A stretch of 64,000 nt of DNA from Zygnema circumcarinatum SAG 698-1b (lineage: Eukaryota > Plantae > Zygnematophyceae): contig CM074808.1 of the NCBI GenBank assembly GCA_037447605.1, positions 3,658,001 to 3,722,000 on the forward strand, written 5' to 3'. The position numbers and the translations under genes were made by a program. Shown here piece by piece: positions 2,491-61,869 of this stretch (within the stretch, counting starts at the first letter, position 1; every line of letters begins with the position of its first letter). Under the pieces are notes generated by a model. The model ran no database searches. It was not told the DNA's origin and saw nothing but the letters and a program-made list of their open reading frames with translations.

Positions 2491-5306
2491 ATGGAACACC
2501 TCCTCCTGGAGGATTTCATGGCGGTCGAGGGAGGGCTCCAGGGGCGGCCTGGAGGCTCGAAGGAGGAGGAAATGAGGTAACTAGAGGCTCCATGGCTGCT
2601 GGAACAAAACTGAACTGAACTGAACTGCAAAAGTGAGCTGACCCTGACATGCGCATGGAACGACATTGCTTCCTTCCCTGAAACTCGTGGTTTTGCTGCA
2701 AAGCAAGGGATGGATGGTGCTGCTTCCTTTCCTGGCGTGTAATGGATGGCAATGGATGATGCTCAGGCCGTGCCTGGTGCAGTGTGAGCTCCACTGCAAC
2801 GACGGAGATGCTGGCGGAAATAGGAGGGAAAGGAGGAGGAGGCGGCGGAGGCGGAGGAAGAGGATTAGATTATGTGAAAATGTCCAAGGAAGACCTCTTA
2901 TGCGACCTTGAACATGTTCTCTGGCAGCACAACTGTGAGCGCTTCCTTCTCCTCACGGGCAGACATGACCTGCTGCCAAGCTCTTTCCAAAACGGAGTTC
3001 GGCACATGGAAACCCTAAACCAGGCGAATGCGCAGCAGAGGGATTCGGGGGAGACTGCGGCGGTCGAAGCAGGCAGACAGGAAGAAGGGGTGGAGGGCAG
3101 ATCGGGATTTGGGGAGGGGATGGGAGAGGAGTGGGAGAGAAAGGTGGAGACAGGGGATAGAAGGGAAGGAGTGGAGAGAGAGGAGCCAGGCGGCAGAGAG
3201 GGGAGAGCGGAAGCAGGGGAGGGAGAGGAGAGAGGGGAGGCAGGGGAGGGAGAAGGGAGGGAGAAGGCAGGGGGCCGAGAGAAGAAAGGGGAAGTAGGGG
3301 TAGGAAAGGCGAGGAGGGAGGCAGGAAAGAAGGAAGAGAGAAAGGAGGCAAGGGTGACAGTGGAGCGTTTGGCAAGTGTGGATTTGAGGGGGCGCAGGCC
3401 GAGACGGTACAAAGGGGAGGAGGAGAGGATAAAAAGGGAAGGCAGGGGAGTGAGTATCAGACAGCTTGCGGAGGCTGCAGAGCCTGGCAATGTAGGGTGC
3501 TTGATTGGAGCATCATGGCCGTCACGATTGCGGAAGGGGGAGAACGAGGAGGAGGTCAATGCTCCAAAGGAAGGAAGGAAGTTGAGAGGGAATTCTCGAC
3601 TCGCACGTTCAATATTTCCCATGAGGGTTTTGGAGGCTCAACCTCCAAGAGAAAAACGAAAGTCAGTTAATGGAACGCTGGGTACGAGGGAGGGAAGCGA
3701 AGATATGGAAAATGGCAGGAAAACGGGAGAGAAGGTAGTTTTTGAAAAGCCGGACCTCATTCGACGACTGGGGAGCCATACTGATTTGGAGTCAGTAACT
3801 TCCGACATAGGGGTAGGGCATTCGGAGGCGATAATCATGTTTAGTTCTTCAACAGATGGAACCGATTCGGGGTGGAACATCCCAGAATCTGCTGTTTTAG
3901 GAGCGAGCAGCATTCATGGAAATTCTTCGAATCGCTCCTACAGCAATGGAAGCAGTTGGTTGCGTGGGAGCGGTGCAGACAGTGTTTCACAATCGCCGAG
4001 AGAAAGTGTAAGTTTCGACGTTGGAAGGGAGAAAGTCTGGCATGGAGGAACAGCAGACGAGGTAATAAAGCAGATGAAGGAGGGAAATGGCTCTGCTGTA
4101 GCTGAAGCCATTTCTGTATTAAGGACGACGGTGGTCTCACAAATGTATGGCGAAGAAAGTGGAGAGATCCCGTCTGTTTTACGTTCAAGCAATAGAGCTG
4201 AAGTCGAGAATGCAGATTCTGCAAGTCTTGCTGTGATACTTAAAGTTATCGATGTTCTCTCATCCAGTGAACAAAGGGTTCGACAGAGGGCAGCAACTGT
4301 GATCCTCCAGATTGCGAAAGTGAATCGATTCGCCGGAATATTAGGTCGAGCAGGATGCATCCCTCCCCTTGTAGATCTTCTCTCTTTCAGCAAACCCTCT
4401 CCCTCGTGCTCCCCCACTGCCAGTATAGACCGAGGACTACCAATCAATAGCCCCATCATCTCTCCCTCAGAAACTCCAATCAATTCAGCGGTTGAAGGCC
4501 ATCGTCTGCGTGTGCCTCCATATCTCAGCTCCGTTTCCACTCCCTTCCTATTGAGAGACTCCGCTAGAGGAACGGGAAAGAAGGGAGAGGAGGGGCCATG
4601 TCCTCCGGAAAGCGTTATCCCACCCGATTCAGAGCAGCATCATCCTCTTGATGATGGGTTAATAGGACATAGAGCCGCTGCTAGAGCACTATACTACCTT
4701 GCCCTCCACCGTCCTAACAAGGTGAAAATTGTAAGGGCCGGAGCAGTTCCCATACTTCTTAGGCTTCTGGAGGAAGACGCGAAGTCAGGGCTTGTTACAG
4801 ATGCCGTTCGGCTCCTTTCTAGTTTAGCAATGAATCCAACTGCTCGGGAAATGATAGTAGACCTTGAGGGGATTCCTCTGCTTGCGGAGGTTGTGGAAAA
4901 CGGAACTGATCTCGGCAAAGAAAACGCCGCGGCTGCCTTGCTTCACATGGCCGGAGCAAGTCCGGAGTGGCGGCAAGCAATGGTTGCAGAAGGGCTATTG
5001 CCAATACTGCAGTCAATGCAGCATACTGCCAAGGGCGTTCGGGGAAAAGCTAAAGTGAGATATGGGTTTGGGTGTGTGTGAAACATTGCGCTGATTCGTT
5101 GAATCTGTTCATGATTTGGGTTAATGCACTCGTTGAGCTGTTCGTGGGGGGGGTTAGTGTTAAGAGCAACATTTGGTTATCTTCTCATCGATTGTTGTGT
5201 TGTTTGGTTACTGTGGCAGGCAAAGCTGTTGTATGAACATTTGCGAGATCGACCGAAGGGCCCCGGACAGGGCCGACGTGAGCATGTTTTTTCGTCTTTT
5301 TCTTGA
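2491..5306 (+). CDS. Armadillo (ARM) repeat protein, paralog 1; exons 2491-2576, 2783-5054, 5220-5306
   Basis: ARM repeats (AGCIPPLVDLL, RAAARALYYLALHRPNKVKIVRAGAVPILLRLL, GTDLGKENAAAALLHM). GT-AG junctions are in frame (phase 2, then phase 0: RGKAK|AKLLYEHLR). Long E/G/R low-complexity N-terminal region. Confidence 0.85.
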
Positions 5307-6993
5307 TCTTCCCTTTTTTGCTATTGGCCGCTAATAACGAATTCGACATGATGTGTCTTTGAAGACGGCGTTTGGTGCTGTCATCCAGGAGCATATCTTT
5401 ACAAGCACACAGTTCTTGGGTGTATTTCTTTACTTATAATTGTTTGTTACCTTAACAGTGTTGAAGCCTTTGAGAAAGTATAAGTTAGCAAGTTAGCATA
5501 GAAGAAGCATTACGGACACAGTTGAAAGAAGCCGGAGAAAGTGGACAGTAGCTGTACCGATTCTGGAAGGCCCTGTTCATGGTGCTGTTTGCGATTTGAA
5601 CATAGAATAAGTACTAGGCTCACAGTTGAAATGCTCTAGGCAGCGACGTTCCAACTCCAAATGGCCGTGTCCTAAGGCCTTTGAGGAGTTGTCATTTTCA
5701 AGTTTACCTTGTAGCAGAGGTGGTCCACTTCTTCCCCTTTGAAGGAATCCCTTGTGCTTTTTATGTTATATGGAGACCATTGCTCAAGTGAAGGCGTCAA
5801 ATCTTTAACAGTGTGGCAGGTTACGTTTGGCTTAATCTCGTTTCACTTCATTTCTTAGTTTCATTTAGATTATTACTTCTAAACTTTGGTCGTTTGGTGT
5901 AGCTTTGGTTTAAGGTTCGCTCGGTTGGTTTGGTTTAGTTTAGCTTATCACTCTTAGTTTCAGTCCTTAAGTTCAGTTCTGGTTCGTTTCCTCTTCTCGT
6001 CGTAGGTTCCTCGTTCCTTCCTCTCTGTGTCGTTAGTTTTGACTTAGTAGACCCTTTCGTTGTGTTATGCCCCTTGTGGACCCTGGTGAGGACCTCGATA
6101 AAGTCATTCTCATTCAGTCACTCTCAGTCTACATGAAACGTGCGGTAAAAATTTCATCACACACTCTTAAGGGCACCCCCCGCCTTTCTAGCGGAACTTA
6201 ACTTTATCGAAACCTGACTATACTGATCTTTATCTCCAATTTCCTTCTTGCTTCAATATGTGATGGAACTGACTTTATCGACATTAACTTTCCTGTCGCC
6301 TCTTTACCGTACAGTTTCCTTGAAATATCTGATGGACTGACTTTATCGAACGTGTCCTTATTCCTTAATCGTCCTTTACCGTACACTCAATTCCTTTGAC
6401 TAACCATTTTAGTCATTGTCGTACGATTAGGAAGGTACCGTCCGTACATAGTTCGTAAGCTTGTTGAAATTTCGAAATTCTCCGTGTTGACCAATCTGGG
6501 CCGCCCATTTCGATCTGTACGAATTGAATCGTGACCGTTGGACGACTCCGCGTATCGGGCCCTAACGCGCAGTGTCGCCGGCGGCTGGCAGGGCCCGTGC
6601 CTGTACAAATCGTACGGGCCTCGATAAAGTCATTTAGAAGTCACGAGGGGAAGTTGACTGTTTAGGTTACCGTACTGCCATCGGGGAGAGGTAAGCAGGT
6701 AAAGGGAGGGGGGGGGGGGAAAGGGAGAGGGAGAGGAAAAGTGGGAGAGAGGGAGAGGAGAGGGGAGGGGAGAGGAGGGGAGAGGAGGGGAGAGGGAGAG
6801 AGGGAGAGAGGGAGAGAGAAAGAGAGGGAGAGGGAGGGAGAGAGCGGGGGAGGAGGAAGGAAAGAAGAGACACCTGGTGGGAGGGAGCGAGTGAGAAAGA
6901 GAAAAAGTGGGGGAGGAGTGAGGGAGAGCGGAGGAAGAGAGTGGGAGAGGGAGGGAGAGGCAGGGAGAGAGAGAGAAAGTAAGGAAGGAGAGG

Positions 6994-51728: not shown

Positions 51729-53917
51729 TTAGCATCCATTGCTATAACCAGCTGATTTTTTAGGCAAACAATACAAAGCACCAACTTGCAGCTTGTCTTT
51801 GCAAGTTTGTCCGTTTACGCTACTGAAGACGGTTTGTGACGAGTGATAATGCGCGCTGAGCACAGCGGTGCAATAATCTCCCAATTTCACCTTATAACAC
51901 TGGCCGGAGGAACATGATGAGCACAAACAGCAGCTGGTTACAACTGCGTTACAGCTCGTCGCGACTAATGCGGGCATGATTACCAGACTCCTCCCCTCAG
52001 CTACCTCCGTTTTGGGAGGGACAATTGGCTGGTAAGGGTAAGTGCACACCTGGCAAGGAGATATGGGAGGATCAGGACATACGCATTTTGTTTTGCACGA
52101 GGGGAGGGGGAGAGGGGAAAGAGAAGAGGGAGGAGGAAGGAGAGGAAGTGGGGGGGGGGGGGGGACGATGGGAAGAGGGGAGGGAGAGGGGGGTGTGATC
52201 ATGTGGAGGGGAGAGAAAGGAGGGAGGTTGGTGGGAGAGGGCATTATGAAGGGGAGAGAAAGGGAGATGGAGAGACGCCTACATGAAAGACGGAGGAAGG
52301 AGGGAAGTGGAAAAGGAGGGGAGGGAGATGTTGAGGAACCGTACGAGAGGACGATAGAGAGAAAGAGAGACGGGCGGAGGAGAATTGAAGCGAGGGAAAA
52401 TGATGGACGAATAGAGTGGGGAGAAAACGAATTGCCAAAGGTGTGACGTAATGGAAAGGGAAATCAGATAGTGGGACACGGCGAGAGAGCGAGGTAAAAA
52501 CTGAGAGATAAAGGGAACGAGGGGGGAATGAAGAGAAGGGGAGAGGCAAAGTGGAGTGGAAAGTGAAGAGAGGAGAGAGAAGAGGTGAGCAGGCTCACCT
52601 CCTGCCCGGGCTGCAGTAGGTCACATTGTAGGCCAGGATTGAGTGTATAGTAGAGGAGGGGGAAATTGCTCGTTTTCCGAATAATGGAAGGACATGTGTC
52701 CCCAACTTCAGCCGCAACAAAGCTCCCGCAGGGATAGCCCAGCGCTGTGACGTAGCCAAACTGGACACATATCTGCAAAATGAAGGGGTCCCACAAACAT
52801 GAGGCTGGGTGGGAAGAGAGTGAGGGAGGGTGGGAGATTGGTAGGAGTGGGAAGATTTGTATTCAGGGGGTTGCTTACTTGACTGGTTTATACAGGTTTC
52901 CTGTCAAAAAGAGAGAATGAGGTAAACTCACTGTGGTTCGCGCTGTGCAGTTGTAATCCATATCGCTGTTTAACATCCTTAAATCAATCTCAGAAATTCC
53001 AAAGTTGGATGCTATGGATGTGCAGTTATCCGCCTGCATAAGCCAAAGCGCTAAGTTGAACGATCAAGCATGGAAATGTGCTAGAAAAGACGCGAATGTG
53101 CTATGTTTTACAGAAACCAAACTTTAGCTTCAAAACATGCCTTCGCAAGACCCTACTTCGCCCACAAGCCTTATAATCAATGTTCATACAATTACATTCA
53201 ACAACTTCTTCAAAATCACATTGAAAACAAAGCAACTCAAAAGGGCAGCTACAAGTGGATGATTGGCTTGCACGCTGCCAAGAATTCAGAAAAAAAAATT
53301 TAAAAAGAGGAATTAATGGGTCAACAACTGACCTCATCCGTTGTCTGAATCTGATAGAGAAGTGCGCATTGATCAGTGGTTTCGGAAACCGGACCAATGT
53401 TGACAACTGTTCCAGCGGTTATGTTGTTTGTACAGTCCAATCCCTGTTTGGAAATGTAAGGGAAACTTGTTATCATTCCAATTCATATCATATTCGTATT
53501 GGTTCGTTCCTATTTATAATTGCTGTTCAAATTACTGCATTGTTACAGTCACAATGTGGTATGCACTTTCAGCAGGCCTTAACCAGAGTATGTAGTCCTT
53601 AATAAACTGCACCGTAAAAATTGATAAATTGGAGAAGCTCCTGAGGCAGGCTAAGAAAATCTGCTCTAGTTGCCCTTTCCATGCATAGCAGCTTTCTACC
53701 TTACCTTTTGCTTTAAAGTTTATCCTTTCTCAGCTTCCCGTTCACAATATGCCAATGTATGAAGCAAAGTAATCAGAATTCAAGAATTTAAGCTGAGGCA
53801 TTACCGGATTAATGATCAAGAATGTGTACGGACTAAGCGCGCCTCGGAGAGTATCACACGTGTCCCCTTCTTCGGCAGTTAAAGAGTTGTTTGGGGACAG
53901 AGCATTGGTGTAAATAT
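51729..53917 (-). other. Four LysM domains (fungal/algal Cys-flanked type) within the mosaic gene
   Basis: [10 protein letters not shown]...FLIINP|GLDC; YQIQTTDE|[22 protein letters not shown]; [12 protein letters not shown]...[16 protein letters not shown]|VC; [12 protein letters not shown]...[17 protein letters not shown]. Confidence 0.8.
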
Positions 53918-56900
53918 CTGCTCATACAAACACACAAAAGCAATATAAATATCTCTCCGATCAAACACCAAGTCTGAGGGTTTGAGGTAAAAAGCGAGTC
54001 ACGAACAACCAAGACGACTTTTTTGAAATTCTCTTTTTGCATGGAGGTTATCTGTTTTCTATATTGAAATCCTTACCGGGTGCTGAACAGGTGATTGATG
54101 AATCCGCAAGTAGAGTCGGAGTAAAGCCTGCTTCCTCGGGGCAAGTACAAATGTACCCTCCGATTCCATCATTTTCACAAGTTCCGATCCCGCACGGATT
54201 TACGTATTGAGAATTGCAGACATCCACTGTGTAATCACACAAAAAAGTGAAACAGAAGAGCAAGCAAGTTCAGAAGGAGTTCAACTCGATGTACTACCCA
54301 ACCAAAGGGAACGGCGACCCCAAATTCATCAACTACAAAACACAATATTAATATTAAAAATAACACACGTCAAAACATAACAGCAAGATAATACAACTTA
54401 ATCACACAGTAATTATCATTACAGGCAGAATAAGGTAAGATAGAATGCAGGAGGAGCGTACCCAGAACGCAAGCAGGTCTCCCATCTGTATTTTGCAGAG
54501 TTACATATCCTTCAGGGCAATCACATGTGTATCCGACACCTGAACTTTGTTCTGAAGTGTCGTTTAGGACCCTGCATCTTCCTCCTCCACATGTGAGAAA
54601 TGGGATTCCAGTAGCAGTACAGCTATCTGGGAAAAAAGGGGGTGGAGGGCTGGGAGGAGGGGAAGGAGGAGGGGGAGGACTTGGGGGAGGAGGGGAAGGA
54701 GGTGGCGGAGAAGGTGGAGGAGGAGAAAAAAGAGGGGGGAAGGGAGGGGGAGGGGCAGTGGGAGGGAAAGGGGAAGAACTCCCTGGTGAAGGAGAAGGGG
54801 CGGGAGCAAACGGAGGGAAAGGGGAAGGAGGGCAAGGAGGTAGGTCGGAGAAAGGAGATGGAGTTGGAGAGTCAAGAGGGGGGAAGCTGGGGAAGGGAGC
54901 TGGTGCAGGTGCGGGAGAGGGCAATGGAGTAGGGAAGTAGAGAGGGGAGGGAGAGTAGCGAGGGATGGAGGGAGCGAGGGAGGAAGGAGAAGGCGAAGGT
55001 GCGGGAGAGATCGGAGAAGGAGGATCAGGAGGTGGGAGGGCTGCTGGTGATTGAAAGAGTGGAGCAGGAGAGGGTTCAGCGATGAAAGAGAGAATGTGGC
55101 GAAGTGGACCCTTGCGAAACGAGTTATATAATGGTAGAGGGTTTGCGAGTTGAGAGGGCTTTGCAGATTCCAAGATACGATTGGGTTCACGAGGGGAGGG
55201 AAGGGGAGATGGTGGCTCTGAATTGCGGGGCCCATAGCAGAAGATAGAACTGATGTAATGTGATCCTTTCAACCTCCTGTAGGTCACATTAAACAAATAA
55301 ATGAAAAGAATCAGGCGCCATTCTGGATAGACAAGTTGACATCACACTTCAAAAGCAAGGTTGATAAGATATCGATCAGACTCACAGTTGCAGTTCCGAT
55401 GTACTCCTTGTGTTGTCATAGTACAGGTAGTAGCTGCTTCTACATCCTCCTTCACTGTGAAGCTCAAACCCATAGCAAAGTTGATTCTTTTGTTGGAAAT
55501 CAAGAACGTTATTCTTGATTGTTATAAGCCCAAACCGACCAGCCTTCTCGCCGAGGTCCATACATGGCTTCTCGTAAGTTGGTGTTTCTATGGATGAATG
55601 TGAGTTTCCAAGAATGATGGTGGTAGGGTTTGGCGAAGGAGATGAGGATGAGAGGCCGAAAGCAGGCAAGTGGCATTGAGGTCGTACTTCATGTTGCGCT
55701 GCTTCAGCTATTTTCACAAATTCCAAAAAGCGGAGTGGAAAATTAGTAAAAACATAAAAGGAGACTACTCGACCACTAGTCAAAGGATCTTTACGTGCAT
55801 GGTGAGAGACGTGGGGAGGGCGGGGGACCGAGAGAGTCAGAAATAGAGAGGAGAGCGAGAGGAAAGCATTGAGAGGGAGAGGAAGGGAGAGGCATAGAGC
55901 CGTAGAGTGAGAGGGCGAGGGAAAGTTGGAGTAAGAGAGAAAGGGAAAGAGTTAATGGTTATGTGCATGGCAAAGGTGACGCTGAGCTTACTGCACATAA
56001 TGTAGGCATCCACATTCTGTATCGTTTCAAAAGTAGTCAATGTTGACAGAAATATACACTCCGAGGATGAGATTACGTAGTTGAATCCAACACAGTGTTC
56101 CTTCTGAAAGCACAAACTTGTACAGTCTTCCGGTGTGCCCCTAATTGAGTCTCCCCTATCGGATCCAAGCCACATTGTTGATGCTTGATATGTGAGGCCA
56201 AGACATGGTCCTCCGCACAAATTGCTTGCTGCCCCCACACATTCAATGTAAAATAAAGAAAAAAGTGTCAAAGCTCGAAGAAAAAACTTCCGTTCGTGAA
56301 CAAACTTGCGGTCTTCTGCACTCTCTCTCTCTCTGCCAAACACAAAAGATAACTTCGTTGCTGCAGTGGTGTTGTGTTGCTAAGCCTTACTTACCACACT
56401 TAATGTAGGAATTAAGCTCCTCTACCTCGACACTCGAGACAGGATTACGATAGCTGTTGATCAAATAACATTCGTCCCCACTTGCTGATGTCATGAAGCC
56501 TGCACAGTGTTCGGTAATGTCGCATATAGCAGAACAGTTGGAAGGAACCGACATTTGTAGGCGCGATGAGGGGTAAGTATACTTTGCTAGTAGACTGTGG
56601 GTGTACACAGTTAACGGTTGAAACGTGTACCCCCAACAAAGGCCGCCGCAGGAAGAATGATAGCCTGAACACATACCCGCACCACTACTCAAATTCCTTA
56701 GGCCATCATTATTGAAAAATTCTTTATACAGTACACGTGTCAAAGATGTTACAGGAACATTTTAAGCTAGGGTTCGCAAACAAATGCTAAAGATATGTCA
56801 TTTCATAGAGGCTCTGCTCATCATTTGAAGAAGTTTCGGAAAGGAAAGGGAACAGCTGCTGCTGCTTACTTGGAGGAAGGGTTTTGCCAGTCGCGAAGGG

Positions 56901-59900
56901 GTCGCCATACCCTCCAATAATACCTGTACATTGTAGAACTTGGATGAGACCAGCATCAAAATTCGTCCTTAAGAAGATTTGAACGACTTGGTAAGCACTT
57001 CACATATGGTAAGCATGAATATGCGAGTATCCGGATCTATCGCTTTACCTCCATTACTATCATGCGCAGACTCCCTGATCGACAAGGTTTGTTGGGCTCG
57101 ACGTCTCACAGGGAACGCGGTCGTGTCGGCTGCACATTACAGCAATTAAAGCATTAAAGCATTAAAGCATGAAAATCTTTACCAATGTATGGAGTCTCAG
57201 GTTCCCACATTGCAGACGAAGAAGAACTAAAACGAATAATAAATGGATAGAGGGTACTTCGGTGACGGTATAACTTACGGAAGGCATTGACGACAGGATA
57301 GAGAGGGGATACAATGAGCATGTTGCACACGCCGGGACCCATCGCCATGTCCCTTTGAATCTTTATGTACCCGTCCGTGCCCCAAGCAGAGCCCCATGAG
57401 TTTCGTGCGAGCCAGTACGGACTTGGATCGTCGCCATAGCCGACAATCAGGAGATTGTGATCGACTGTGTCGAGATTGCAAGTTGAGCCGTAGGTGCCAT
57501 TGTAAATTTCGTCCTGTACAAACGATTAAGTTGAATGAGCACAAAGGCACTGTAGGATAAATAGAACTGCTTTGAACAGCCTAATGGATGTATGACAGGG
57601 AGATGCAGGAGGTGATTTTTCTATTCATTCGCTTTGCTCATTTTATGAACTCTGTCAATTTAAGGATAGCGCTCACTAATGAAGGCCCAAAGTCTCAATT
57701 CATGGAAAACTTACAGTATCTGTTATCCAATTCAGGAGACCCCCTCTTGTGGAAATTCCGATAATCACCGGCTGGTTTGCAACAGCTCGCATCAATGCCT
57801 TTGGATCCAATGGAGGGACCTTCTCCCAACCGATCACGGTATCCATTGCGAGAGGGCTCGTCTGCAAGCACAAACAGCTTCCATTGATTTGAGTGAAGGA
57901 GATACACAAATTCTAACTATTTTCTTTGTTGAAGGCTGGTATTATAAAAATATGTCGAAAATAGCTGAAAGTGAAAGAGAGAGCAATTGCTGTAGTACTT
58001 ACGCTGCTGCCATTGCATGATCCTCCACTGTTGTACTCCGATTCAGTTTGAACAAAACCACCTCGAGCAACATACTCCAACGCATCTTCAGGAAGACCTC
58101 CCGTGCAGTTATCAAATGTTTTGATAGCTTCACCGACGCAGTCGATCAGCTCTTCCACCGACAGGCGCTCAGAATAAGTTGAGTTATTCAAAAAAAGGTT
58201 GATCATCTGTGCAGCTTGAACTGCATCAACCGCTGAGTAAGCCCAGCTAGCAGCTGCGTGGGAAGGAAAGCAAAGACATGCGATTAGGGTTGCAGACTTA
58301 GGGTTTCTGTGGTTTTATGGCAGCAACAGTTAAAGACGAAAAGCAATTCCGCGCTTGTCTGAATTGCATGCAATTGCCTTTAATGATGATACAACCAACA
58401 CATTCTGTGATCAGAGGCTCACCACATTCCATCTGGTTGCGCACCGACTCGGCAAAAATATGCCTCCAATCGACTACTGCAGGGAGTGCTCCATCAGGAA
58501 TGCTCTCATAACGAGAAAACACGTTTTTCTTGATGAAGGCTATGTCTCTATAAATGGATGAAATGTTCAGGTTTAAGCCCGTGGTGAAGTTTCCACTTTT
58601 CCCGCCTAAAATGATCCTCTCGCTGGGAACGGAGGGTGCACCACATGTCACGTAGTCCGGTGTCACGTCACACTGCTGGACTTCGTCTCCAAAGATAAGC
58701 GGCTCCGGACACACGAAAATTTCCAGGACGGTTCCGTTTCCAGAGCAGCTGCAGTAGTGGCTGTAGCACAGAGGAAGGCGGAAAAATCATCTGTAAATCT
58801 CGGGCAGAATGACAACGAAATGGATAACAAGGGAATGAACATTTTCTCTTTTTTTTTTTTTGAAAAACAAAAAACAATATGACAAAGACAACTTGTTTTG
58901 ATGTAGATCTATTTCCGCTCGTTGTATTAAACAAATTTGGAGGGCAGTATTTGTAGGTCAGAGTTGACCCACCTGCAAAACGGAGGCTCGATTCGGCGAT
59001 CAGCAAAAAGGCCAGCGCTCTTATTGACACAGCATGTGTCCTCTATTCGCAACTGCATTCAAAGGGAAATCGAAGCATGAGTTTTGAGTTTCTCGGTGTG
59101 GTAAAACCGAAACATATCCTCAGAATTTGTAAGACTTGCACATCCAATGATTGCAATGAGAAAAGCAGGAAAGAAACAGGCAGGAAAGGAACATTCAACC
59201 TGCTTACTTTAGTTGAAGGTTCGAGATATGGTGGAGGAGGAGCTTGAAAGATCGGAGCTGGAGGCACTGGTGGATATGGAGGAGAAGGTGGAGGTGGATA
59301 TACAGGTCTGCATGGTGGAGGTGGGGGTAGAGCTGGAGTTGGGGAAGGACCTGGTGCTAGTGGAGGTGAAGTTGGGGGAGGTGGTGGAAGTGGTAGGTTT
59401 TCTGTAGGTGGCGGAAATCCTTCAGGCGATGAAGGTGGTGTGGGGACTAAAGGAGGTGATGGAGTGGGAGGTGAGGGAGGAGGAGAAGGGAACCTCCGCC
59501 TCTTTCCAACGCCGGGAGGATGCTTTCCAATTCCTGGAGGGTGCCTCCCTACGCCTGGCGGGTGTCTTCCAGAGGGGGGTATTCCGGGGACCCGCCTATT
59601 TCCTACTCCTGGAGGGTGATTTCCTACTCCCGGGGGATGTCTTCCGACCCCGGGAGGATGCCTCCCCTTAGGAACGGGTTGTCCAGAGGTTATATGACCG
59701 CCAACACCAGGTGGGTGCTTTCCAACACCGGGAGGATGCTTCCCATTCGTCTGTGGTAGTGAGGAGGGTGAGGAAGGGAGTGGGGGAGTGGTAGTAAGGG
59801 CCTGCAGAGACTGCAATGGAGGTTTCAGGAGGAACATGAATAGGGTTAGGTGTTGCCAATAGTGAAACGAAGTCAACAAACCATGTTCAGATGGAGGCAA

Positions 59901-60590
59901 AACTTGATTTTAACATCAAGGAAACCTTTTTTTTTTTTCGTTTGAAGTTCGGTTGAAAATTTGAGGTTAAGTTAAAGGACGACATTGGATTGTTCGTTAT
60001 TTGATGCTGGAATTATGATTGAGGACAAATCGAGTCCTTTTTGAGATAATCAGGTTTATTTGCTAAAGTCATCATCAACTTTTTTATCCAAAACCAGGGG
60101 GAAGATCATTTCTGATTGCCCATAAAAATCACACAAATTTTCCAACATGCATAAAGCAGCTGCACTTGAACATGATAAGGATGATATGTGATTATATGTG
60201 GTCGGCTGTATAGGGGCCCACCTCATTCTCAGTACCCTGCCACGTGTCTCCTGCCGCATCCTCCCAGCTGGCAAGCTCCCGTGCTACCACCGTAGCTTCC
60301 TCCTCTCCCTCACCCGCCAACTCGTTTCTCTCTCCCTCTCCCTCTCCCTCTCTCTCGTTCGCCCCCCTCATACTGTACCATTTAAGGGCCAACTGCTTCA
60401 AAGAACTGCTAACTGAGAAAGTCTCTTGGTCGGAGAACTTTTCCATGTCAGTTTCTGTTGGTTCGAAAGACCGGCTGTTGTGCTTTGGGTCGTTGGGCCA
60501 TTGAAAGAGGAAGGGGAGGTGTTGGTAGGAGAGTCTTGCTGACATCAGCAGGAGCGTGATGCAGAGAACAAACTGGGCTGCTGGCGTCAT
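51729..60590 (-). CDS. Secreted mosaic protein of about 1603 aa: SP, Pro/HPPG repeats, CBM14, papain C1A (Cys to Ser), PAN x2-3, extensin, EGF x2, LysM x4; 19 exons
   Basis: Manual exons (minus strand): 60590-60222, 59801-59208, 59052-58973, 58760-58423, 58253-58003, 57861-57715, 57513-57279, 57129-57049, 56923-56870, 56721-56395, 56228-55992, 55698-55386, 55276-54462, 54226-54077, 53917-53805, 53443-53333, 53033-52932, 52772-52599, 52049-51729. All are GT-AG and phase-compatible; total 4812 nt. The exon 1-2 junction is the least secure. Confidence 0.72.
54077..54630 (-). other. Two EGF-like domains within the mosaic gene
   Basis: C-x9-C-GGGR-C...YTCDCPEGY...C and C-x7-C-GIGT-C...YICTCPEE...C six-cysteine patterns. 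Confidence 0.85.
55386..56721 (-). other. Two clear and one possible PAN/apple domains within the mosaic gene
   Basis: [15 protein letters not shown]...ECYL; [17 protein letters not shown]...ECIF; a third weaker NQLCYGFE...GC. Confidence 0.7.
57279..58480 (-). other. Papain-family (C1A) domain with Ser at the catalytic Cys position
   Basis: LPAVVDWR...RNQMEC|AASWAYS; LSVEELIDC; [12 protein letters not shown]; AVANQPV; [10 protein letters not shown]; [20 protein letters not shown]. Confidence 0.9.
58643..59034 (-). other. CBM14 / peritrophin-A type chitin-binding domain split over two exons
   Basis: Spliced product [59 protein letters not shown] fits the six-Cys chitin-binding type 2 spacing (C2-x5-C3, CP..L.F....C). 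Confidence 0.75.
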
Positions 60591-61869
60591 CTTATTTCTC
60601 AGTAGAGAAGCTCCGAGCTGGAACTGAACTGCAACTAAATTTAACGGATTTTTGGCGCTGGGAAGGGACGTTCCTGCTCAGTTGATTGACCTGCGCAGAA
60701 AGGTTCAGAGAATAGAATTAAGTGCAGGAAAAATACAGCTACAGAAAGAGTGAGAGACAATTTATTACTAAAAGTTTACAGTTTTCGTTGCTTTGACATT
60801 TTTCCTCAATCTCTTCTTCTGCCAGCTCTTTCCTCCCTTTTGCTCTTCTTTCCCATCCCCTGCTGGGTCCCCTCCTCTCCTTCGGCCTCTCCCGCCCCTC
60901 CCATCTCACTCTCCCTGTTCCTCTTCCTTCCCTTTTCCCTCCCTCACCGGGCTCCCTCCTCCTCCTCCTCCTCCCTCCTCCTGTCTCTCGCCTTCCCTTC
61001 TACCTTTCCCCTTACCTGCCCCCTCCCCCTCCCCCTCTCCCTCTCCCTCTCCGCGCTCCAAAATGCCCCTTGAAACACTGCTAAAGCCCAATTTTGAGCT
61101 GAACATTTTCTGAAGATAAAAGTTGACTACAAACATTCAGGAGCTCAGAATGAGGAAGAAAACGAAAAATGACTTCCAGAGCTTATGATCTGCAAAGTGA
61201 TGTAGTTTTCTCCTGGAAAGACCCCAGCAGAAAAAGACTAGCCGAGGTGGCTCTAGTGAGAAAGAAAGGAAAGAGCCCGTGGGAAAGCTGGCAAGGAGGC
61301 CGTAAGAAGCAACGGAACTGATGGGTTCTATGGAGAGAGGATATGAAAGAAGGAGAGGTAGAGCCACATTGAGGAGGAGAGGGAGGGAGAGGAGCAAGGA
61401 GGGGGGAGAAGACGCCAGTACAAGAGAAAGGAGAAAGTGGGAGACAGGCAGACATGCAAAAGGACAGACACGGTGAGGGAGAGAGAGAGAGAAAGAGAGG
61501 GAGAGAAAGCGAATTTTCCTCCTACCTTTACCTGACAGCTCTGGAGGACACCCACGTCTGCGATAGAAGACGGGTCTAATTTCCCTCTTCTAAAAAGGCA
61601 GAAAAAGAGAGAGAATAAGAGAAAGAGTGGGAGAGAGAGAGAGAGGAAGTAGAAAGAGAAGGAGAGTGGGAGAAGGGGTGAGAGAGGCTTCAAGAGAGAG
61701 ATTCCAGGCCTTAATTTTCTAACTATTAAAATCTGCTTCTCTCATTAGTTGTCTGATGCGCCGAATGGAGGAACGGAGGGCGGCCGTTGGCCGGCCATCC
61801 AAAGGGAAGCCAAAAAACTAGCCGTTGGAAGGAGCCGGTCCGGACAAGGCGCCGCCGGATGCGGCCAAC

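Follow-up and report, generated by a model that had tools for sequence, protein, structure and literature searches.

A predicted secreted zygnematophyte protein with a serine-type papain fold between CBM14-like and LysM-like modules: a candidate wall- or matrix-anchored binder of GlcNAc glycans

What might a protein do that carries putative chitin-binding modules of two kinds, with a papain fold between them whose nucleophile position is occupied by serine, and is it the product of a single gene? This question is raised by a locus of Zygnema circumcarinatum SAG 698-1b found in the window, that is, the whole stretch of 64,000 nucleotides that was analysed and to which all positions refer. No other algae are as closely related to land plants as the zygnematophytes, so that their extracellular recognition proteins bear on the origin of plant surface immunity and wall sensing.

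The gene was rebuilt from the sequence on the minus strand (60590..51729), where 19 exons, every border being GT..AG, join in frame into a CDS of 4773 nt without internal stop that encodes 1590 amino acids. In this sense, an earlier note made from the letters alone was right about 19 in-frame exons in one gene and about the giant size of the protein, while its figure of about 1603 aa gives way to 1590. The RNA evidence consists of Logan contigs from four public runs of three studies (X1, X2, X5 and X3), placed on 53300-59299. We found in these spliced contigs the 14 joints from exons 2/3 to 15/16, in three to four runs each, with CT..AC ends on the plus strand exactly at the exon borders of the model and zero letter differences. 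An exon of 81 nt (57129-57049) was recovered from the RNA and brings the count to 19, and the joints 57129/57279, 56920(+3)/57046 and 56663(+1)/56869 are present in all four runs. For junction 16/17, the RNA shows a loose contig end at 53332, with 30 nt that match the start of the following exon (53033...). One X1 contig of 3632 nt extends from papain exon 7 to 1009 nt past exon 16, and one X5 contig of 3830 nt from exon 15 to 816 nt upstream of exon 4; these overlapping RNA contigs of 3.6-3.8 kb connect the Pro-rich region with the last LysM modules and the 3'UTR. The share of words of the stretch present in these runs (0.45-0.59) is in line with an exonic fraction of about 0.53.

A trivial explanation for such a long protein would be an artefact, where an over-generous exon model merged neighbouring genes or pseudogene fragments. 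No RNA joint was seen directly for junctions 1/2, 17/18 and 18/19, which depend only on the reading frame, the GT-AG borders and the length of the contigs; chimeras can occur among De Bruijn contigs; and the protein has no entry in a library of 1.84 billion representatives, where a HMMER search with exon 5 gave no identical protein and only 11 weak matches. However, 15 consecutive junctions lie in spliced contigs of four runs at a word depth of 77-135, the contig overlap spans the Pro-rich region to the 3'UTR with no stop in the 4773 nt, a homologue shows the same module order, and the introns are all of 109-549 nt and therefore too short for gene boundaries. The artefact was rejected on the RNA evidence and we consider it extremely improbable. 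The locus is one real, expressed, single zygnematophyte gene that gives one spliced transcript, which settles in its favour the single-transcript claim for which the earlier note had proposed an RNA check. The donor of exon 1 at 60222 is a best guess among the phase-0 GT candidates 60414, 60291, 60288 and 60222, picked because of its consensus and of two contigs ending 133 nt upstream of exon 2, then inside a GGGAGAG repeat.

Table 1. Features of the gene and of the encoded protein, with positions in the window; all lie on the minus strand.
Feature	Position	Strand	Residues	Description and basis
Whole CDS	51729..60590	-	1-1590	1590 codons plus stop TAA at 51729-51731; in-frame assembly
Exons 1-5, high to low	60590-60222, 59810-59208, 59052-58973, 58760-58423, 58253-58003	-		In-frame model
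Exons 6-10, high to low	57861-57715, 57513-57279, 57129-57049, 56923-56870, 56664-56395	-		In-frame model
Exons 11-15, high to low	56228-55992, 55707-55386, 55276-54462, 54226-54077, 53917-53805	-		In-frame model
Exons 16-19, high to low	53443-53333, 53033-52932, 52772-52599, 52049-51729	-		In-frame model
Start codon and probable signal peptide	60534..60590	-	1 to ~19	Hydrophobic core, read by eye
Eight [K/R/N]HPPG[V/I]G heptads	59505..59741	-	147-225	Basic, His/Pro/Gly-rich; motif count
Pro-rich spacer	59208..59504	-	226-324	Translation
CBM14/peritrophin-A-like six-Cys module	58667..59034	-	331-382	Split by intron 3 (58972-58761); junction in RNA
Linker of 60 aa where a prodomain would be	58487..58666	-	383-442	N[FY]TTGL[ND]L[ND] motif, common to L001
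Papain-fold (Peptidase_C1) domain	57280..58486	-	443-674	Exons 4-7; PF00112
Ser at the catalytic Cys25 position	58246..58248	-	466	Codon AGC; residue 2 of exon 5, aligned to Cys25 of dionain-1 (5a24)
Pair of short linker exons, 81 and 54 nt	56870..57129	-		Both phase 1-1; RNA joints
PAN/apple-like module 1	56396..56656	-	723-809	One 1-1 exon; homologous to module 2
PAN/apple module 2	55993..56223	-	812-888	One 1-1 exon; Pfam and fold
Putative degenerate third PAN-like module	55237..55570	-	935-1009	Phase-2 intron inside; partial Cys/aromatic pattern by eye
Pro/Ser-rich rod ending in six SP3-5 extensin motifs	54625..55221	-	1015-1213	Single exon, RNA-covered
EGF-like module 1	54469..54621	-	1215-1265	Six-Cys pattern, GYxCxCxxGY signature
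EGF-like module 2	54087..54218	-	1271-1314	One 1-1 exon; six-Cys pattern
Four Cys-containing LysM-like repeats	51759..53882	-		LysM1 53882-53390, LysM2 53362-52761, LysM3 52724-52035, LysM4 51902-51759; introns split LysM1-3

The protein reads, from its N-terminus, as a signal peptide, HPPGVG heptads with a Pro-rich spacer, CBM14, the papain fold, two PAN modules with a degenerate third, an SP4 extensin rod, two EGF and four LysM modules, an order that agrees with the one proposed earlier according to the translation, the exon-wise Pfam searches and the PDB matches, the third PAN being read by eye. Eight introns lie from the papain C-terminal border to the first LysM, and seven of them are in phase 1, a predominance that had also been noted. 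The signal peptide is linked to the remaining protein through the predicted exon 1/2 junction. We found no TM-like hydrophobic segment in the translation, in keeping with the earlier reading, and the C-terminus is polar, without a hydrophobic tail; we infer that the protein is secreted and has no membrane anchor. A period of 21 nt was detected by TRF at 59502-59745, over the heptads. As a lead only, the Atlas features of this region are similar to those of streptophyte proline-rich wall proteins. In the rod, six SP3-5 motifs are contiguous at aa 1180-1208, and no YxY-type cross-link motif was noticed on reading the translation by eye.

All domain searches were run exon by exon, and the scores of LysM, EGF and CBM14 at or below the Pfam thresholds are partly explained by this and by the introns that split the domains. 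For CBM_14 (PF01607), the exon 4 part alone reached 20.5 bits (E=5.5e-4; cut-off 22.1) over profile positions 18-53 of 53; the remaining third of the domain lies in exon 3, and the six Cys are present. The homologous exon of L001 scores 23.4 bits, above the same cut-off. A PDB sequence search with the CBM14 exon gave no match. For the LysM repeats, Pfam (PF01476) on exon pieces gave E=0.0064 for the LysM2 exon, 0.11, and 0.056 for LysM4, all under the cut-off. The best PDB match of LysM3 is the chitinase A LysM 5bum (E=5e-4) and that of LysM4 the LysM effector Ecp6, 4b8v (E=1e-3), and LysM1 was picked up by a profile built from LysM3 and LysM4 (i-E=1.3e-3). The AF2 model of LysM4 (pLDDT 51) was too poor to use.

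For PAN2, PAN_1 (PF00024) reached 21.8 bits against a cut-off of 21.4, and PAN_4 E=1.4e-4. The AF2 model of this module (pLDDT 70.8) gave top Foldseek matches in the PDB that were all PAN/apple (TMq 0.61-0.69), including the HGF N domain, Eimeria PAN, SML-2, plasminogen and factor XI. A PDB sequence search with PAN2 gave nothing useful, and the sole PDB match of a four-sequence PAN profile was the PAN lectin SML-2 (E=0.07). PAN1 shares 30% identity with PAN2 (E=4e-5, tblastn self-hits), and the putative third module had no Pfam match. Pfam EGF (PF00008) scored 16.8 bits (E=0.0086) on the first EGF-like module and 19.3 bits (E=0.0014) on the second, against a cut-off of 21.5.

This set of modules might also suit a protein that builds the alga's own extracellular matrix or mediates adhesion there, be it in mucilage, in the contact of cells during conjugation or in the zygospore wall; the lectin-like CBM14, PAN and LysM would then have endogenous glycans or partner proteins as their ligands. 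Adhesion is the classical role of PAN/apple and EGF modules, and the PAN assignment is backed by the fold matches; the long Hyp-type rods and the wall-protein-like heptads would fit too, and animals have inactive cathepsin-like matrix proteins, TINAG and TINAGL1. None of the sampled words was present in runs X8-X10, which carry the same species label; this fits condition-specific expression but equally strain divergence. Nevertheless, the presence in a single protein of two independent types of putative GlcNAc-polymer-binding module speaks for chitin or peptidoglycan, desmid walls are not known to contain an endogenous GlcNAc polymer, and the LysM repeats have chitin binders as their best matches of solved structure. 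A role confined to the own matrix seems to us quite unlikely.

PF00112 gave significant matches to both lobes of the papain fold, over profile positions 26-91 in exon 5 (E=3.9e-10) and over positions 154-211 in exon 7 (E=7.3e-16), and the closest proteins of solved structure are papain-like proteases of plants (procerain, triticain, ananain and ficin, E ~1e-15). The catalytic Cys25 of an active C1 cysteine protease is absent and Ser takes its place, so that the Cys-to-Ser change announced in the earlier note is borne out by the alignment to dionain-1; the adjoining junction is present in RNA, with no letter differences from the genome at this site. On the other hand, Gln19 (58433-58435), His159 (57457-57459) and Asn175 (57400-57402) are kept, Trp177 and the Gly-Gly of the substrate cleft are retained, and the motifs RNQMEC, VDHNLL and ARNSWG stand at the expected positions. 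An I29 prodomain (Inhibitor_I29, PF08246) was not matched in exon 4, within the 60 residues that separate CBM14 from the mature-type N-terminus. The Atlas features of this linker are faintly like those of I29/C1 N-terminal fragments, with scores of at most 0.74, a lead only.

Homologues were found in two other public samples, L001 and L082. L001 opens with a canonical signal peptide and about 17 HPPGxG heptads, followed by a Pro-rich region, CBM14, papain, two PAN-like exons and an SPn stretch, in the same module order as here up to the extensin rod. Its active site reads C-N-G-S-W-A-Y-S, with Ser again, encoded by AGT (AGC here), His and Asn are kept, and the intron beside the active site falls at the identical codon position. 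L001 shares 55-60% aa identity with this protein, a divergence at which synonymous sites are saturated, and may belong to another species or represent a paralogue within a related strain. L082 combines a CBM14 half with a Cys-type papain. Therefore the claim that no described protein has this architecture has to be revised as far as it implies uniqueness: the gene does not stand alone but belongs to a poorly known family of algal genes. Our literature search found no paper on this architecture in Closterium or other zygnematophytes, and none that names the run SRR9302961. A homologue search from the EukProt relative P0007 returned its own isoform only, and P0007 is on record in no contig. Separately, an alignment scan of metagenomes with the papain C-lobe produced 80 loci, which were set aside as generic papain genes with no further module in common.

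The retention of all other active-site residues at the divergence of L001 could equally mean a catalytic Ser-His-Asn site. In this case the domain would be an active serine-type protease, esterase or transferase, delivered by CBM14 and LysM to chitinous or peptidoglycan surfaces for lysis or defence, and the protein would be a targeted enzyme more than a binder. Apart from Cys25, the whole catalytic machinery is conserved in L001 as well, both genes have Ser and their AGY codons are one step from TGY, and silicatein uses the same triad for catalysis; yet Cys-to-Ser papain variants are in general almost inactive as proteases, and there is no prodomain here to control an active one. For the papain-fold domain of Plasmodium SERA5, one study reports a chymotrypsin-like activity (PMC3265493), but the essential role of SERA5 was found in another to be non-enzymatic (PMC4671257). 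Taking both sides together, we regard an active enzyme as unlikely.

As a whole, the explanation that we favour, with moderate confidence, is that of a wall- or matrix-anchored GlcNAc-glycan binder in which the Ser-papain domain is a non-cutting binding module; taken by itself, the domain is probably such a SERA5-like module, by analogy. The protein would be exported, and its basic heptads, together with the Pro-rich and extensin rods of Hyp type, would retain it in the wall or the mucilage. Near the N-terminus CBM14, and at the C-terminus the four LysM, would bind GlcNAc polymers, either the chitin of chytrids and fungi or bacterial peptidoglycan. The Ser-type papain domain would no longer be a cysteine protease and may serve to bind peptides or proteins, a pseudoprotease on the model of Plasmodium SERA5. 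Exon shuffling, with modules of phase 1-1, may have built the gene and driven its diversification, in a lineage-specific family with a variable head and a papain-EGF-LysM body. Judging from the sequence, a function as sensor, trap or effector against chitinous parasites is plausible, as is one in adhesion.

A more speculative possibility, and in our view a distinctly improbable one, is an extracellular integrated-decoy sensor in the sister lineage of land plants, where CBM14 and LysM would hold the protein on the chitinous or bacterial surface of an invader, the papain cleft, catalytically dead yet intact in structure, would capture pathogen protease inhibitors or get cleaved, and PAN and EGF would relay to a receptor; alternatively, the Ser-His-Asn site would perform a new non-proteolytic chemistry on GlcNAc polymers. 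If true, the decoy sensor would constitute an algal counterpart of an Rcr3-type guarded protease and of LysM chitin perception in one polypeptide.

Returning to the wall- or matrix-anchored glycan binder, modules usually deemed animal-type (CBM14, PAN/apple and EGF) appear to have been shuffled via phase-1 introns with plant-type ones (LysM, extensin and papain-like protease) into one predicted secreted protein, which retains a Ser-for-Cys papain domain with an otherwise intact active site. If the binding of chitin or peptidoglycan is true, the family would represent a pre-embryophyte alternative to the LysM receptor kinase system, and it would offer a natural test case for pseudoprotease evolution inside mixed Cys/Ser families.

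Several known systems share parts of this design. Volvox carteri reportedly has a cysteine protease that is induced by wounding and by pheromone and carries LysM-type chitin-binding domains. It is said to be, like the protein described here, a green-algal secreted papain joined to LysM-type repeats via a Hyp-rich extensin-like spacer, and a defence role was proposed for it; in contrast, it is reportedly much smaller, with an intact Cys nucleophile and without CBM14, PAN or EGF. Chitin-binding LysM proteins of plants include those of the CEBiP/LYP type. The best solved matches of LysM3 and LysM4 are Cys-bridged LysM, in the chitinase A of ferns and horsetails (5bum, 4pxv) and in Cladosporium Ecp6 (4b8v); unlike our protein, these are small LysM-only proteins or chitinases without papain, CBM14, PAN or EGF. 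Regarding the papain fold, silicatein, a cathepsin L-like protein of sponges, has a Ser-His-Asn triad, and in TINAG and TINAGL1, matrix proteins of animals, the cathepsin B-like domain is inactive; TINAG also has EGF-like modules. They resemble this protein in a Cys-to-Ser papain fold outside the cell, devoted to non-proteolytic chemistry or matrix binding, but there is no sequence affinity past the C1 family, and the nearest solved relatives here are plant cathepsin L-like proteases. Finally, for Plasmodium SERA5 a non-catalytic Ser-type papain domain is described in a mixed Ser/Cys multigene family (PMC4671257, PMC5500368, PMC7132891), in a secreted protein with a non-enzymatic role that has Ser at Cys25 and keeps His and Asn, as here. 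The Plasmodium lineage and the context are unrelated, and SERA5 is without carbohydrate-binding or adhesion modules; the likeness would lie in a possible mode of action rather than in membership.

The gene, read on the minus strand (60590..51729), was assembled from six-frame segments and enumerated in-frame GT/AG pairs, and RNA evidence was added to an initial 18-exon model. The final model has 19 exons and a CDS of 4773 nt. An earlier note had claimed nineteen GT-AG exons joined in frame into about 1603 aa; the exon structure stands, while the length becomes 1590 aa. We found 14 joints in contigs of four public RNA runs (X1, X2, X5 and X3) aligned to 53300-59299, all matching the model exon borders exactly and ending in CT..AC on the plus strand, that is GT..AG on the gene strand (14/14), with no letter differences from the genome reported over this interval. 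Two RNA joints define an 81-nt exon (57129-57049), and a loose end at 53332 continues into the start of the next exon at 53033; the exon 1/2, 17/18 and 18/19 junctions are predicted from the model. An X1 contig of 3632 nt runs from papain exon 7 to exon 16 and 1009 nt beyond, which correspond to exons 17-19 (597 nt) and about 412 nt of 3'UTR. Also, an X5 contig of 3830 nt starts in exon 15 and extends 816 nt past the upstream end of exon 4, taking in exons 3 and 2 and about 133 nt of exon 1. The overlap of the two contigs spans the papain domain, the PAN modules, the extensin rod and the EGF modules; they therefore represent a single transcript, the point that the earlier note had proposed to check by RNA junctions. 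Furthermore, seven RNA runs (species label organism A) contain 0.45-0.59 of the sampled words from 52600-58600, near the exonic fraction of this stretch (~0.53), as spliced RNA predicts. Alongside these spliced contigs, the chance that the long protein is an artefact appears very slight.

Introns 15, 13 and 11 are read through by low-depth contigs (53449-53833, 54198-54491 and 55678-56019; X2, X3 and X5); their word depth is 8-10, compared with 77-200 in spliced contigs, and they come from unspliced pre-mRNA or from traces of genomic DNA in the libraries. In the SPn-coding stretch at 54692-54731, X2 and X3 contigs diverge into other GGAGG-rich sequence as loose ends, which suggests that extensin-like paralogues are also transcribed or that the repeat varies in length; because of this branching the assemblies break there. 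None of the gene's sampled words is present in X8-X10, three RNA runs from 2017 that share the species label, which reflects either condition-specific expression or strain divergence above a few percent. Purine-rich (GGGAGAGG)n-type simple repeats occur at 52060-52560, 55790-55960, 60300-60370 and 60800-61100; they occupy intron 18 and a section of intron 11, with further copies upstream of the gene and in the 3' part of exon 1, whose donor choice is uncertain because of the repeat inside it. Intron 7 contains a (CATTAAAG)5 microsatellite (57135-57174).

Module order of the protein, and coding segments of the related contig L082
Feature	Position	Remark
Signal-peptide-like hydrophobic N-terminus	aa 1 to ~19	
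Eight [K/R/N]HPPG[V/I]G heptads	aa 147-225	21-nt DNA period
Pro-rich spacer	aa 226-324	
Six-Cys CBM14	aa 331-382	interrupted by intron 3
Linker	aa 383-442	no I29 prodomain match
Papain fold	aa 443-674	
Two small 1-1 exons	between papain fold and PAN modules	
PAN modules	aa 723-809 and 812-888	one exon apiece
Degenerate PAN-like stretch	aa 935-1009	
Pro/Ser rod	aa 1015-1213	six SP3-5 motifs at its end
Two EGF modules	aa 1215-1314	
Four Cys-containing LysM repeats	aa 1330-1581	
L082 coding segments	499-588, 2326-2694, 3069-3916, 4939-5442	

Domains were searched exon by exon, and since introns split several of them the scores are lower bounds. The Peptidase_C1 match is unambiguous, with plant papain-like proteases as nearest solved relatives. 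CBM_14 scores 20.5 bits in Pfam from two-thirds of the domain, against a cut-off of 22.1, and PAN2 meets the PAN_1 cut-off; an AF2 model of PAN2 from a four-row alignment (pLDDT 70.8) gives top Foldseek PDB matches exclusively to PAN/apple structures. PAN1 and PAN2 share 30% identity. The EGF matches lie under the Pfam threshold and their Cys pattern is canonical. The top PDB match of LysM3 is the LysM of chitinase A (5bum, E=5e-4) and that of LysM4 the chitin-binding effector Ecp6 (E=1e-3); in Pfam, the LysM2 exon gives a partial LysM match, and LysM1 was picked up by a profile made from LysM3 and LysM4. As had been read earlier, no TM-like segment was seen in the 1590-aa translation, whose C-terminus is polar. 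Introns after exons 7-11, 13 and 14 are phase 1 and only that after exon 12 is phase 2 (7/8 in phase 1), which bears out the remark on exon shuffling.

The proposed Cys-to-Ser change is encoded at the exon 4/5 junction, TGT G|CT GCT AGC TGG, which is present in RNA and gives C-A-A-S-W-A-Y-S, its Ser aligned to Cys25 of the solved papain-like protease dionain-1. Gln19, Cys22, His159, Asn175 and Trp177 are retained, as is the Gly-Gly segment, so the papain fold is of the Ser-His-Asn type and not decayed, its cleft being otherwise intact.

The protein itself is absent from a library of 1.84 billion representative proteins, where exon 5 finds only 11 matches at E<1e-3. Through one of them we reached L001, a 6.5-kb genomic contig (run SRR9302961), read from reading frames and tblastn. 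Its head has a canonical signal peptide, ~17 HPPGxG heptads, a Pro-rich stretch, CBM14 (23.4 bits in the homologous exon, above the curated cut-off) and a linker that contains the NxTTGLxL motif as well. Its papain domain reads C-N-G-S-W-A-Y-S (Ser codon AGT), with His and Asn kept, and is followed by two PAN-like exons and an SPn stretch at the contig end. The active-site phase-1 intron lies at the identical position (65 nt in L001 vs 169 nt in the gene). Judging by sequence, a second genome or locus, 55-60% identical, shares both the architecture from head to rod and the Ser. In the prodomain's place (58487-58666; L001:4520-4700), the N[FY]TTGL[ND]L[ND] motif kept in both homologues includes an N-glycosylation sequon. 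In L082, an ENA contig, half of a CBM14-like module and a Cys-type papain domain belonging to the same family precede an unrelated ~140-aa module without match to the gene and an SPn stretch, so the family tail is as variable as the head. Both contigs agree with a family having Cys and Ser forms. Additionally, EukProt transcripts P0007 and P0013 show ~70% C-lobe identity and miss the N-terminus, and a metagenome search with the papain C-lobe gave 80 loci, all of them ordinary papain genes that lack the gene's other modules.

The data establish the gene, its transcript, the order of modules and the Ser-type site; the functional picture is inferred. From the module content, the most economical reading may be a secreted GlcNAc-polymer binder whose papain domain does not cut. 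Basic heptads and Hyp-type rods would hold it in wall or mucilage, both ends would carry GlcNAc-polymer binders, PAN and EGF modules would supply protein contacts, and the papain-fold domain would bind on the pattern of SERA5, the Plasmodium papain-fold protein with Ser at Cys25. The role of SERA5 is non-enzymatic, and Ser and Cys types occur side by side in its family (PMC4671257, PMC5500368, PMC7132891). A catalytic Ser-His-Asn site, the main rival, equally predicts that all other catalytic residues are conserved and is for this reason kept as an unlikely but serious option; a role in self-adhesion or conjugation seems more doubtful still. Our literature search found no description of proteins with this architecture in zygnematophytes. 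A Volvox cysteine protease induced by wounding and pheromone, attributed to Amon et al. in 1998, reportedly combines LysM-type chitin-binding domains with an extensin-like spacer, and to our knowledge this is the nearest published kind. Peptidase and LysM domains also occur together in green algae and moss, according to a survey of LysM architectures (PMC2728734). In contrast to the Volvox protease and the surveyed proteins, the protein described here has a Ser nucleophile, adds CBM14, PAN and EGF modules, and differs in size.
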